Below are positions 18,571-24,173 of a DNA stretch of 28,012 nt, piece by piece (position 1 is the stretch's first letter; each line of letters begins with the position of its first letter). Origin of the DNA: Bugula neritina (taxonomy: Eukaryota > Animalia > Bryozoa); contig CAXIUT010000296.1 in NCBI GenBank assembly GCA_964035545.1, forward strand, positions 1 through 28,012. The letters are read 5' to 3'. The translations under genes were made by a program, and so were the position numbers. Below the pieces are notes generated by a model. It had not been told where the DNA came from, did no database searches, and was given only the letters and a program-made list of their open reading frames with translations.

Positions 18571-20331
18571 ATGTCAACCATCAAGCTAGCTATTCTTGTG
18601 CTCCTGTTGATTACTCTATCGATGGGCGGAATGTAGTATGATTTCTAGTCAGTGTGGTAAAGTGAATACTATCTAGAGTATAATTCAAGTTAAAAAGAAA
18701 CCAACCGTAACTCATTGATAAGTTAGAAGTATCTTTCTGGTAATCTAAGCATCAAAGTAATTTATTATTGAAAGAAAGTAAGGGTATTTTATTTATTTAT
18801 TTTAGCGTAAATAAATGATTTACAAAAAGGCGTATTTTATCTATTTATTCAGAGTATTAAATTCTTTAGAAATAGGAGTATTCTTTACATTAACCAAGAG
18901 TATTAAATCTTTTAAAAATAGGTGTATTTTTGCGACTTATTTAGGGTATAAATTTGTCAACTTAAGATGTAGTCTATCTATTAACTTTAGTGTACTAGAT
19001 AATTAAATGGAAGGTGTAATATTTACATTTATCTAAGCGTAGTCAATCATTATATTCTAGGAGTATTTTTCTATCGATTAAAGTGTATTAAATTATCGAG
19101 TAGCAGACGTACTATCTAGTATATTTTAGTGTATATTATTTTATTATCTCTAGTGGTACTTTTATATCTATATAGCGTATTAATTATGAGATTTAGTGGT
19201 ATTATTTATTTTGACATAGGGTGCCAATATTTAAGCTTAGATGTTTTCTTATAATCGATCTTAGCGTATAATGATAATTTAATATTAGAAGTTCTCTTTT
19301 GCCTATTGCAGGGTATTTAATACTATGACATAGTCGTACTTTTAAAATGATCAAAGAGTATCAAAATAAATCAATATTAGACGTGCTTTTATTTTAATGT
19401 TAGAGTATCAAACTATTAAGAAAAGTTGTAGTCAGTTTCTTTATTTAGTGTATTTTCTATCCAATAAAGATGTATCATTCTTTATATCTCAGTGTGGTAC
19501 TAAATGATAATATGGTAGATGTAATTTTGCTATTGATTTTAGGGTATCAAAAACTCAATTTAGGTGTACTGTCCTTTATATCTCAGTGCCGTATCAAATC
19601 GTTTAACTCTAGCTGTATAGTTGCTATTGATTTTAGAGTAATAAATAAATCAATACTAGGAGTTATTTTTCATTTACATAAGGGTATAAACTATTTTTAA
19701 AAAGAAGTAGTTATTTGTTTATATTAGTGTATTAATTAAAGATACTTTAGGCGTACTTTTATAATCATTGAAGTGTAATTAAATGTTTTACTTAGCGGTA
19801 ATGTTTATTTAACTAAGGGTACTTAATTTTTAAACCTAGAAGTTATTTTTGAATTAATTAAGAGTATAGAAATTTTCAATAAAAGGCGTACTTATTTAAT
19901 TATACGTAGGGTATTTAATTGTTTTAATAAAGCCGTAATATTTCTATTTATGTAGTGTATTGAATTTTTTATTCCTAGATGTTATCTTTTCTTTTTATTT
20001 AGCGTATAAATCATAAAATTAAGAAGTAACTTTATACTAATTAAAGTGTTTCAAGTATTTTAACTTAGACGTACTTTCCTAGCTATCTAAAGGGTACTTA
20101 GTTGTTTATCTAAGGAGTAACTTTTCATTAACATTAGTGTAAAAATTATTTAACTTTTAGTGGTACTTTTAAAATAATTGAAGCGTATCAAATAAATTAG
20201 TTGTAGTCGTACTCTTTAAGTGATTCAAGAGTATTAGATTATTAATTCTAGGAGTATTTTTTATACTAATCTAAGTGTACTAAAATAACTGATCTTTAGG
20301 CAGTGTATCATTGGTCGTGAAAAAGAACTGA
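18571..20331 (+). CDS. Micro-exon gene A: secreted Cys-rich prepro-peptide (67 aa) with ~73 tiny introns
   Basis: Removing every ~20-23-nt GT..AG segment gives MSTIKLAILVLLLITLSMGGIVKTNQHQIRRRSDCRYLLDQVNIYCDGCPRECSESAYQYGLLRCSN-TGA; exons alternate 1 nt and 2 nt over 18784-20299. Confidence 0.85.
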
Positions 20332-20577
20332 GTGTATTATCTCCAAAACAAAGACCTTAACGATCAATAGAGAGTAATACTACAATTATGAAGAGTTCGT
20401 TTGATTCTCACATAATTCTAACCTTACCTTATCATCTGAATGATTGTTTGTTTAAATATCATTTATTCATAGAGATTATTATAGCTAAAAAAATCAGTAT
20501 GCAGAAAGGAGACTGTTTCTGTCAGTGATTATTACTATTTTTACTATTTTATATTATTTACTAACACGAATAAACGA

Positions 20578-21207
20578 TCAGTAAATACTATGAGGACTGT
20601 GCATGATTTTCTTGAACTGTTCGTAAGTGATGCGAGATCCTTCTTCCTCATCGACCTTTTCGAACACATAGTCTAGATCTGACTGCTACCACTGCTCTCC
20701 TAAACTCCTTAACAAAACCTACAGATCTTTGCGACTAAGATATCCCTTATTGTCTCTGTCTAGTTTCCTGAACATCTTCTTTATTTCCCTTTAGCCTTCC
20801 AGTTCAGTTGGCTCTCCTGAAATAATCTTCATAAAAGCTGGAAAGTTAACTCCGCCAAGACAGTCCTCGTCATACTAAGCAATGATGCTGTAGATGGTTT
20901 CCTTAGTAGCGTGAAATCCCTGGTGGAAAAGTGCTACCTTCAAGTCGTTCGGAGTCAGAAGACCACTCTGATTAGAGTCGTAGGCATCAAAGGCTTCCTT
21001 AATAGAGACTATGTCTTCTTCGCTGAACTGAGAAGTGATGTAGAGAGTAGGATTGAACTAGGCTTGGTGCTTGATGGCTGAATACCCTGGACTGTGAGAT
21101 GACCTTTTGTGTCTACTTGTATCTTTGAGCCTACTGGTATCTTTGTGTCGAATCTAGTCTTCGAAGAGGTGTCTGATTGGTGTGCTTCTTTTTTACTTTG
21201 TAGTCAT
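20578..21207 (-). CDS. Centrin/calmodulin-like EF-hand protein, copy A (209 aa)
   Basis: IKEAFDAYDSNQSGLLTPNDL, IIAEYDEDCLGGVNFPAF, MFRKLDRDNKGYLSRKDL, VDEEEGSRITYEQF; intronless 630-nt ORF. Confidence 0.9.
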
Positions 21208-21271
21208 CGTTATCTGTAACTCTACTTATTGATTTTGAATATTACAGTTTGTTATTATCAAAAATAAATCA

Positions 21272-21408
21272 TCAAAAACTTACTTTTCTAAAGGACATTT
21301 CCTCAGATAAAATCAGTGTCTGAACCGGTTATTTCTAAAATATCCAAAAAGAAGCCTCCTCTGAACAGACTTGACTAGATTCTTCTCCATTGTAGTTGTT
21401 TTATTCAA
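21272..21408 (-). pseudogene. Orphan 3' fragment of the HSF-domain gene
   Basis: Near-identical to 25103-25239, the last ~45 codons of the HSF gene; no upstream part is present. Confidence 0.8.
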
Positions 21409-22406
21409 AATTTTAAACAAGAAAAAATATTAAATTATTTTATTATGAATAGATGCAGTTTAAGAGAAAATTATTTCCTTTTATTGCTCAAAATCTTTTA
21501 GAATCATTTTGTTTCTCTACTAAATCGTTTATATCAATAAACTTTCAAACACAATATAACTATAACAATATATTCTAAATACAAAATAATCTAAAACATC
21601 AGAATTTTTGCTATACCCAAGTCTTCTAACTATTCTAAACATCATCAACTTGTCAAAGGTTTAGTTGTTTACTCTGTTTTTATCTCTATTTTTATTTTAT
21701 TTACTGTCCTTTATTGTTATTTGACTATTCTTTATAACTATTTTTATTTTTTCAAAGCCTGATAATCATTATTTTTGGATAATTTGATTGTTTTAAGTAC
21801 TTTAAGCTAATATTTAATTCGAAATCATTAATTTTTTATTTATTCTTTGACATTTACTAAAAATACAAACGTCAATCAGTAAATCTTATTTTCTTTATGA
21901 GAAAAATAAATCACTTTTTCGACTATTTTTCAGCTCAGTCCATTCTAACTAACAAAACAAGGCACTTGTACTTTTAAAAACTATCCTACAATAGATTTTG
22001 ATATTTTTATTAACACTTTTGAAACTTACAGGTCAACTTGTATTCAGTCATAAATCATCCTTTCCCTGAGCTATGAACTTCTCCTGCTTTTCTCTAGTTT
22101 ACTATTGCAATCCGGTATTATTTAATCACCTTATTAATGATCATGCATGTTTGATGATTCAGCTGAAGAGGTTCTCTTATTAAAGGAAAATTCAATTTTT
22201 GAAAGAAGAACAAAGGTTAATTAGAGTTTTGGCTGATTAGTGTACTTAATGACTTATCAGGTAAAGAAGTAGCTTTCAAAAGGACTTCATCTCTTATAAA
22301 TATTATTATAGAGAACAGAAATAGCATGAGAATCCATAAACAAGAGTGAGTCAGTGGTTATAACTACATCTTTTTTATGGTAAGATCATCTTTCATTCTG
22401 AACTTA

Positions 22407-24173
22407 ATGTCAACCATCAAGCTAGCTATTCTTGTGCTCCTGTTGATTACTCTATCGATGGGCGGAATGTAGTATGACTTCTAGTCAGTGTGGTAAAGTG
22501 AATACTATCTAGAGTATAATTTAAGTTAAAAAGAAACCAACCGTAACTCATTGATAAGTTAGAAGTATTCTTTCTGGTAATCTAAGAGGCGACGTTTTAG
22601 TAAATAAGCTGCCTAACTATAGATGTATTTTGTCTATTTTTTAGCGTAAATAAATTACTTAGATATAGGCGTATTTTATTTATACTTATATAGGGTATTA
22701 ATGAATAAAATTCAAGGTGTAGTTTATCTATTTATAAAGGGTAATAAATCTTCTAGAAATAGGTGTAGTTTTAAGACTTATTAAGGGTATTAATGATAAA
22801 ATTAAGGTGTAGCCTATCTATTTACCTTAGTGTACTAGATAATTAAATGGAAGGTGTACTATTTACATTTATATAAGTGTAGTCAATCATTAGATTCTAG
22901 AAGTATTATTCTATTGATCAAAGTGTATGAAATTATAGATTCTAGAAGTATTATTTAAATTGATCTAAGCGTAAAAGATCATTCAATTCTAGTGGTACTT
23001 TTATATCTATATAGCGTATTAACTATGAGATTTTAGTTGTCTTATTCTTTTTAATTTAGTGTATAAAAATATTTAACTATAGATGTTACCTTGCTTTTGA
23101 ACTTAGAGTATTAATACAATTCAAAAATAGCAGTTTTTCTTCTATTTATTATAGAGTATTTATCATAATGACAAAGTGGTAAATATCTATTGATTAAGAG
23201 TATCAAAATAATTCAATATCAGCAGTGCTTTTATTTTAATGCTAGTGTATAGAACCATTAAACAAAAGATGTAATCTATTGATTAATTTTAGTGTATGAG
23301 ATAATGTATTACAGCAGTACCATATTCTATATTTCAGTGTGGTAAAAATCATTCAACTGTAGGTGTATACTTGCGATTGATTTTAGGGTATCAAAAACTC
23401 AATTTAGGTGTACTGTCCTTTATATCTCAGTGCCGTATCAAATCATTTAACTCTAGCTGTATAGCTACTTTTGATTTTAGAGTAATAAAGAAATCAATAG
23501 TAGATGTTCTTTTTCATTTATATAAGTGTATAAACTATTTTAAAAAGATGTAGTTTATTTGATGATGTTAGTGTATTGATTAAAGATACTTTAGGCGTAC
23601 TTTTATTATCATTGAAGTGTAATTAAATGTTTTATGATAGTGGTAATGTTTATTTTAACTAAGAGTGCTTAATTTTTAAACCTAGGTGTAATTTTTGAAT
23701 TAATTAAGGGTATATAACTTTTCAATAAAAGCCGTATTTGTTTTATTATTTGTAGGGTATTTAATTATTTGAATAAAGCCGTAATATGTCATTTATGTAG
23801 CGTATTGAATTTTTTTATTCCTAGGCGTTATCTTTATTTTATTTAGCGTATAAATCATGAGATTTAGAAGTAATTTTATACTAAGAAAGTGTTTCAAATA
23901 TTTTAACTTAGACGTACTTTCCTACTTATCAAAAGGGTACTTAGTTGTTTATCTAAGGAGTAGTTTTTCATTAACATTAGTGTAAAAATCATTTAACTTT
24001 TAGTGGTAATAAAAGATTAATTTAAGTGTATCAAATAATCTAGCTATAGTTGTACTCTTTAAGTGATTTAAAGAGTATTAGATTATCAACTCTAGGAGTA
24101 TTTTTATACTAATCTAAGTGTAATAAAATAACTCATCTTAGGCAGCGTATCATTGATTACAATGAAGGGTTGA
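22407..24173 (+). CDS. Micro-exon gene B: secreted Cys-rich prepro-peptide (68 aa) with ~73 tiny introns
   Basis: The same parse gives MSTIKLAILVLLLITLSMGGIVKTNQRRRFNRGGGCEELLYTMTYSCGGCPNYCLSAARQYGLFRCSG-TGA; exon sizes match gene A throughout the array. Confidence 0.85.

Follow-up and report, generated by a model that had tools for sequence, protein, structure and literature searches.

Tandem micro-exon genes on a peritrich macronuclear chromosome specify a candidate pair of secreted five-cysteine peptides

We describe two tandem genes, A and B, on a small ciliate chromosome in which nearly the whole mature part of the product is encoded by alternating exons of one and two nucleotides (nt), and whose spliced frames specify small peptides with a signal-like N-terminus and one shared framework of five cysteines (Cys). 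The window analyzed here is the entire 28,012-base contig CAXIUT010000296.1 (C305), part of the 216-Mb assembly deposited for the bryozoan Bugula neritina; the large chromosomes of this assembly belong to a different organism, and C305 is a cobiont contig. An initial annotation, made from the letters alone, had proposed a hypervariable, secreted, Cys-rich prepro-peptide family of a peritrich, with a role as pheromone, recognition or defence peptide. We find it somewhat likely, at a probability of roughly 55%, that A and B produce a spliced, exported pair of five-Cys peptides that combines a conserved scaffold with fast-changing loops.

Each copy consists of exon 1, six short head exons, 66 array exons and a last exon holding one codon and TGA (Table 1). 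The array exons alternate 1, 2, 1, 2 and so on in length, the only 4-nt exons being TGTG and TGCC, and the introns that separate them measure 20-23 nt and run from GTA to TAG. In all, 72 of the 74 exons are no longer than 13 nt, and about 62 per gene are 1-2 nt. We parsed the genes in two ways, as a minimum-exon chain (parse 1) and by the maximal summed intron score, which combines intron length with a splice-end weight matrix trained on 128 array units of C305 (parse 2). Both methods agree on the array, and the scored parse gives one open frame in each copy, which confirms the observation of micro-exon array genes with predicted Cys-rich products. In the head exons, by our reasoning from the parses, only the one with typical intron lengths (22-nt head introns) preserves the frame. 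This region also offers alternative in-frame 5' splice sites 3 nt apart, TGTG/gtaaag with a 20-nt intron or T/gtggta with a 23-nt intron, and the choice between them adds or omits one Val, which the scored parse leaves out. The N-terminus previously given as an identical stretch of 26 residues is therefore shared as described, but over 25 residues in the scored parse, with the Val depending on the 5' splice site chosen.

Two further details concern the same gene models. The two 4-nt exons sit in the best-kept stretch of the array, which is 96% identical between A and B, and each corresponds to three fused micro-exons, that is, to the absence of two introns. Both copies also contain an in-frame ATG at 18541 (position in A), 10 codons upstream of the proposed start, and a start there would leave the signal peptide in place, with a longer N-terminal region. 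We favor the downstream ATG because sister genes, described below, have a common M-S-x-I-K-L start.

The units between the array exons have the properties of introns. The pattern AG-N(1-2)-GT[AG] occurs 61 times in array A, compared with 4.5 ± 2.1 times in shuffled sequence, and its clusters are confined to the two array regions within the window. The units start with GTA in 85% of cases, have an A at position -7 in 70%, which is a likely branch point, end in T/A-A-G and are 20-23 nt long, with interiors that contain 6% G and 17% G+C. An ordinary 20-nt GTA...CAG intron at 3079-3098 (+) in a 3-hydroxyisobutyrate-dehydrogenase-like gene belongs to their class, and its removal restores the frame between the motifs T-M-L-P-T-S and I-D-S-S-T-I. 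All 146 units of the two arrays retain their splice ends and their length though the interiors have drifted apart, and the mean mutual identity of non-homologous units is at background level. What the 146 units have in common is only what a spliceosome requires. A recent minisatellite was considered and rejected, as Tandem Repeats Finder reports no repeat in either array, and no known RNA family matched. In both arrays, introns that follow 1-nt exons are A-rich (A 0.40-0.43, T 0.39-0.43), while those that follow 2-nt exons are T-rich (A 0.24-0.26, T 0.56); the array has the look of an ancient tandem expansion whose unit comprised two introns and one codon. In the dehydrogenase-like gene we also observed an intron candidate at 3024-3045 that scores above the intron at 3079-3098 yet is coding (V-T-M-L-P-T-S), so the intron score alone yields false positives outside the arrays. 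A narrow distribution of intron lengths has been described for three peritrichs, in a report that does not mention micro-exon arrays (PMC13685798).

The chromosome itself determines how these units can be read. Telomere repeats cap both ends of the contig, so C305 is a whole macronuclear chromosome, 28 kb long, from a peritrich ciliate, and its genes use no stop codon other than TGA. A NEK-like kinase gene at 5752-7341 (+) has TAA at the invariant Glu of S-P-E and again in L-Y-E, which is direct evidence that TAA encodes Glu on C305, as in the peritrich nuclear code, and the array of B contains two in-frame TAA codons read in the same way. In the centrin-like gene, sense TAA and TAG codons coincide with positions that are Glu or Asp in centrins; the assignment at diagnostic kinase sites concerns TAA only. 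The peritrich origin proposed in the initial annotation therefore stands on the telomere-capped chromosome and on this code, and the same two findings together identify the array units as introns. The alternative that they are germline-only DNA (internal eliminated sequences, IES) is ruled out by the telomeres at both contig ends.

We next consider whether the spliced frame is coding. In both copies, the spliced sequence holds a single open phase to the shared TGA. When the array-exon letters were shuffled, five or more Cys appeared in 0.6% of trials (p = 0.006). Of the 36 aligned positions 16 are conserved, and these include each of the five Cys of A, an outcome with a chance probability of 0.012. 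The array-exon letters are evenly composed, with 45% G+C, next to the 17% of the intron interiors. A different explanation is that the arrays remain unspliced, as diverged intron-like repeats in a 3' region or in a non-coding transcript, and that the product is the read-through frame from the same ATG. With TAA and TAG as sense codons such frames do exist (66 codons in A; in B, 148 open codons, 129 of them from the ATG), no RNA evidence was found at the locus, and the splicing of single-nucleotide exons is otherwise known only from isolated cases (PMC4674806, PMC12940212). On the other hand, the read-through frames of A and B differ in both length and content, which argues that they are not the product, while the spliced frames of the two copies have the five Cys, the stop and three motifs in common. 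The retention of splice ends and of a 20-23 nt length by all 146 units despite their diverged interiors, together with the coding-like composition of the exon letters, also speaks against unspliced arrays, and we regard this explanation as rather improbable.

The spliced products of A and B, translated with TGA as the only stop, have 66 and 67 residues, respectively. In each, a signal-like N-terminus leads into a short linker rich in Arg, which is followed by a domain of the form C-x10-C-x2-C-x3-C-x11-C, a framework that the initial annotation had already given and that is exact in both products. All five Cys of each precursor lie within this domain. Sixteen of its 36 aligned residues are identical between A and B, including every Cys, and the invariant residues also include G-C-P, Q-Y-G-L and R-C-S. 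Residues 1-20 contain one Lys, an 11-residue hydrophobic core and S-M-G-G, with small residues at -3 and -1 and a mean hydropathy that reaches its maximum of 3.8 over residues 6-14, and are shaped like a cleavable signal peptide. Three consecutive Arg occur in both copies, as had been noted, but at positions that are not homologous: the RRR of A ends 2 residues before the first Cys and is partly array-encoded, whereas that of B lies 6 residues before the first Cys, within a 13-nt exon, and is followed by F-N-R-G-G-G. The peptide strings in the initial annotation were incomplete at this point, leaving out HQI, which precedes RRR in A, and FNR, which follows it in B. That an Arg run is retained through different codons hints at a processing site.

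With a net charge of -2 for A and of 0 to +1 for B, the peptides are not of the cationic antimicrobial type, and the fifth Cys could putatively provide a dimer contact or a free thiol. We found no related families in Pfam (E ≤ 10) or NCBIfam, no candidate homologue in a protein database search with the A/B alignment and no unsplit paralog when all six frames of the assembly were searched with mature A. A profile search of the PDB returned only chance matches to Fe-S proteins and hCG beta (best E 1.3), none of them to a pheromone, in a library whose content of pheromone chains was unchecked. The proposal of a secreted prepro-peptide family thus survives in part: the small precursor with its canonical signal-like N-terminus is consistent with secretion, and the family comprises two paralogs in this assembly, with no relatives in Pfam, NCBIfam, the PDB or the protein databases at the sensitivity of these searches.

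A and B lie in a tandem duplication whose two copies differ mainly in the arrays. Between the copies, identity is 92-100% in the upstream region, in exon 1 and in the EF-hand gene, while in the array it is 64-87% in the first half and 80-96% in the second half. Micro-exon letters differ at 37 of 108 positions (34%) and intron interiors at 191 of 1014 (19%), giving an odds ratio of 2.25 (Fisher p = 4e-4); no other class of sites in the duplication has diverged as far as the coding letters. Over 36 codons, the rates of nonsynonymous (dN) and synonymous (dS) change are 0.51 and 0.53, a ratio of 0.96. The scaffold is held, and the remaining residues are replaced at about the synonymous rate or faster. 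The term hypervariable is therefore supported only for the comparison of the paralogs, with 34% difference in exons, 19% in introns and 0-8% in the flanks. Among the 26 variant positions listed for other runs, 2 lie in exons, compared with 7% expected, a chance rate that gives no support for hypervariability among strains. The unit count is equal in both arrays, which gives no indication that cassettes were gained or lost after the copies separated. We also observed joints between the copies in contigs of two public DNA runs: one (20307/24199) connects array A directly to the B flank, with 3891 nt skipped, and the other (24090/20247) leads from the end of B back to that of A. These may be copy-number or recombinant variants, or the two copies may have collapsed during assembly.

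Taken together, these results are consistent with the following course of events. The two genes would be protein-coding tandem paralogs on the 28-kb macronuclear chromosome of a peritrich. Each pre-mRNA would lose 73 ordinary mini-introns, so that every mature codon is put together from one 1-nt and one 2-nt exon. In the resulting precursor of about 66 residues, the signal peptide would probably be cleaved around Gly19/Gly20, and the Arg run in the short linker could serve as a dibasic processing site. This would release a domain of 35-39 residues held by the five invariant Cys plus G-C-P and Q-Y-G-L, and the peptide, having entered the secretory pathway, would act outside the cell. The sequence itself establishes the genetic code, the macronuclear origin, the anatomy and reading frame of the genes, the conserved scaffold and the profile of divergence, and from these features we infer splicing at the locus, export, cleavage, disulfides and function.

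Several observations weigh against this account. Four public runs placed on the locus are DNA contigs that extend over introns and spacers and have no spliced joints, which leaves them silent on expression, and runs labelled as RNA and as the same species contain ~0.00 of the sampled words. In exact-pattern scans for the Cys core and the exon-1 junction, the spliced sequence was absent from metagenome contigs, and protein database searches with the A/B alignment, and likewise with a sister gene on another contig (C274), retrieved no transcript-derived protein. For the signal and cleavage sites we relied on inspection by eye and not on a predictor, and an odd number of Cys is unusual for a folded secreted mini-protein. 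As for the divergence, a dN/dS of ~0.96 alone does not show positive selection, the intron interiors are probably constrained (their G content is only 6%), which may inflate the contrast between exons and introns, and gene conversion that homogenizes the flanks may produce the same profile. The family, finally, is defined by two sequences only.

To place A and B among similar genes, we scanned the assembly for further arrays. A first genome-wide array pattern was swamped by satellites of the host chromosomes, and its loci (L003-L032) were used only as a negative set. Pattern scans located further arrays only on contigs C147, C209, C274 and C285, with one isolated match on C39. The start-exon pattern is found only in A, B and a head-to-head pair of genes on C274; matches with one mismatch were discarded, as they lie on large host chromosomes and a control with the reversed pattern gave an equal number. 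The genes on C274 and C209 encode proteins of 78-106 residues with signal peptides of the same kind as those of A and B, but with Ala/Asp-rich or acidic mature parts that lack the Cys framework. For a C274 gene, the parser trained on C305 returns 63 introns and a coding sequence (CDS) of 309 nt. The C274 genes have an identical start region and then diverge, the same constant-then-variable layout as in A and B. In this ciliate, complete shattering thus seems to accompany small secreted proteins, and the five-Cys type has two members in the portion of the ciliate genome present in the assembly. Arrays are not limited to such proteins, however, because the array on C285 lies within a larger gene with TPR-like sequence.

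Table 1. Coordinates of genes A and B, of their surroundings on C305 and of array genes on other contigs.
Feature	Position	Strand	Description
Gene A, coding span (ATG to TGA)	18571..20331	+	74 exons, 73 introns, 201 nt CDS, 66-residue precursor; scored parse
Gene B, coding span	22407..24173	+	74 exons, 73 introns, 204 nt CDS, 67-residue precursor; scored parse
Exon 1 of A	18571..18632	+	62 nt; Met and signal-like segment: MSTIK, 11-residue hydrophobic core, SMGG
Exon 1 of B	22407..22468	+	Same sequence as exon 1 of A; 100% identity over 201 nt
Head exons of A	18653..18783	+	T, A, AAACCAACC, AA, CATCAAA, TAAGG; linker up to first Arg
13-nt exon specific to B	22587..22599	+	Arg-Arg-Arg-Phe; replaces 7-nt exon of A
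Micro-exon array of A	18806..20304	+	Two Arg and most of the five-Cys domain; final exon 5 nt
Micro-exon array of B	22645..24146	+	Exon number and order as in A
4-nt exon TGTG	A 19493-19496; B 23338-23341	+	Unsplit Cys codon of C-x2-C-P core
4-nt exon TGCC	A 19587-19590; B 23431-23434	+	Unsplit Cys codon of C-x2-C-P core
Last exon of A	20326..20331	+	AAC TGA (Asn, stop)
Last exon of B	24168..24173	+	GGT TGA (Gly, stop)
Tandem duplication (~3.84 kb), copy 1	17966..21430	.	Promoter region, gene A, minus-strand centrin-like EF-hand gene
Tandem duplication, copy 2	21797..25260	.	Gene B and second EF-hand gene
Centrin-like EF-hand genes	20578-21100 and 24409-24930	-	Co-duplicated; 97-100% identical, unlike the arrays
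Telomere (CCCCAA)n	1..78	.	C4A2 repeats
Telomere (GGGGTT)n	27926..28012	.	G4T2 repeats
C274 head-to-head gene pair	~2390-3418 and 5502-6600	- and +	Start M-S-S-I-K-L...
C209 gene	~8000-9553	-	Start M-S-I-Y-K-L-L...
C285 array	4835-5417	+	Very regular 43-nt repeat of two introns with 1-nt and 2-nt exons; 28 micro-exons in all

The sister genes bear on what the peptides might do. One possibility is that the product is a component of a secretory organelle or of the extracellular matrix, such as the stalk, adhesive disc, pellicle or extrusome content, or that the array is mainly regulatory and controls expression through splicing. The Ala/Asp-rich or acidic, Cys-free secreted proteins of the other shattered genes look more like matrix or cargo than like signals, and an unpaired Cys would suit covalent cross-linking. 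Fast replacement of residues between fixed Cys is, however, atypical of structural proteins, a mature part of 36 residues is very small for a matrix component, and there is no evidence for a regulatory role of the introns; we therefore consider this explanation unlikely. For the candidate five-Cys peptides, the pattern of divergence resembles that of multigene effector, defence and toxin peptide families, and we lean toward an effector or defence role, in interaction with other organisms, over that of a mating pheromone, because both copies are paralogs in one genome and the other shattered genes encode small secreted proteins.

The pheromone role raised in the initial annotation would make the peptides mating or self/non-self signals similar to those of Euplotes, diffusible, specific to cell types and made as prepro-proteins. 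Conjugation in peritrichs requires partner finding, which counts in its favor, as does the acidic character of mature A. The pheromones of Euplotes (Er, En and Ef) are small disulfide-rich proteins made as pre-pro-precursors with a pre-segment of ~19 residues and a short pro-segment, and are encoded on small macronuclear chromosomes (PMC9229436). A and B are likewise small Cys-rich ciliate products encoded on a small macronuclear chromosome, and their layout of a signal, a short pro part and a Cys-rich part of ~36 residues resembles these precursors. The analogy holds for precursor architecture only. Pfam and PDB profile searches detected no sequence relation and no significant match to a solved chain, although the pheromone content of the library was unchecked, and the five Cys of A and B differ from the even number of disulfide-paired Cys in Euplotes (PMC9229436). 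Moreover, Euplotes pheromones are alleles of one locus, whereas A and B lie together on one chromosome as tandem paralogs and have an entirely different gene architecture, and nothing in the data ties the locus to conjugation. The predicted pro-segment of E. focardii is cut at Gly-Ser and not at basic residues (PMC9229436), while the candidate site in A and B is an Arg run. Given these differences, we judge a pheromone role to be improbable.

In gene logic, the closest analogy is with the micro-exon genes (MEGs) of schistosomes, in which micro-exons carry most of the CDS and whose small, variable products are secreted and begin with a signal peptide (PMC10526429). The bulk of the CDS of A and B is likewise in micro-exons. 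MEG exons, on the other hand, are symmetric and 3-81 bp long, with introns of up to 5 kb (PMC10526429), whereas those of A and B are 1 and 2 nt (twice 4 nt), stay in frame only as pairs and are separated by introns of 20-23 nt, and the two lineages are unrelated. The spliceosome can join a 1-nt exon in Arabidopsis and Fusarium (PMC4674806, PMC12940212), but these exons stand singly in ordinary genes, while A and B have about 30 one-letter exons in a row per gene.

The closest analogy in evolutionary pattern is with peptide families of the conotoxin and defensin type, which combine a conserved signal and a fixed Cys framework with fast-changing residues between the Cys, coding letters that outpace the adjacent introns, and tandem duplicates. 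A and B, in the two sequences at hand, share this pattern, with an identical exon 1, a diverged mature part and five of five Cys kept, but differ from these families in having no homology to them, two members, near-neutral charge and an odd number of Cys. A more far-reaching possibility, which we put forward tentatively, is that A and B are one family within a class of secreted-protein genes in which each mature codon sits in its own intron-flanked cassette, and that this layout drives or permits turnover codon by codon, by point change, by cassettes exchanged among paralogs and, possibly, by the skipping of exon pairs in frame. If true, this would amount to a way of diversifying peptides that has not been described in any organism.

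To our knowledge, peritrichs have no known secreted peptide with a signalling, defence or effector role. Should the peptides of A and B prove real, they would represent an orphan family of small secreted disulfide peptides made by peritrichs. Their coding letters change fastest within a near-identical duplication though each letter or pair of letters is its own exon. Extreme micro-exon architecture would then be tied to fast-evolving secreted products, as it is in the unrelated schistosome MEGs, which suggests a general connection between the two. Altogether, the locus offers a compact two-copy test case for how the spliceosome handles runs of 1-nt exons.

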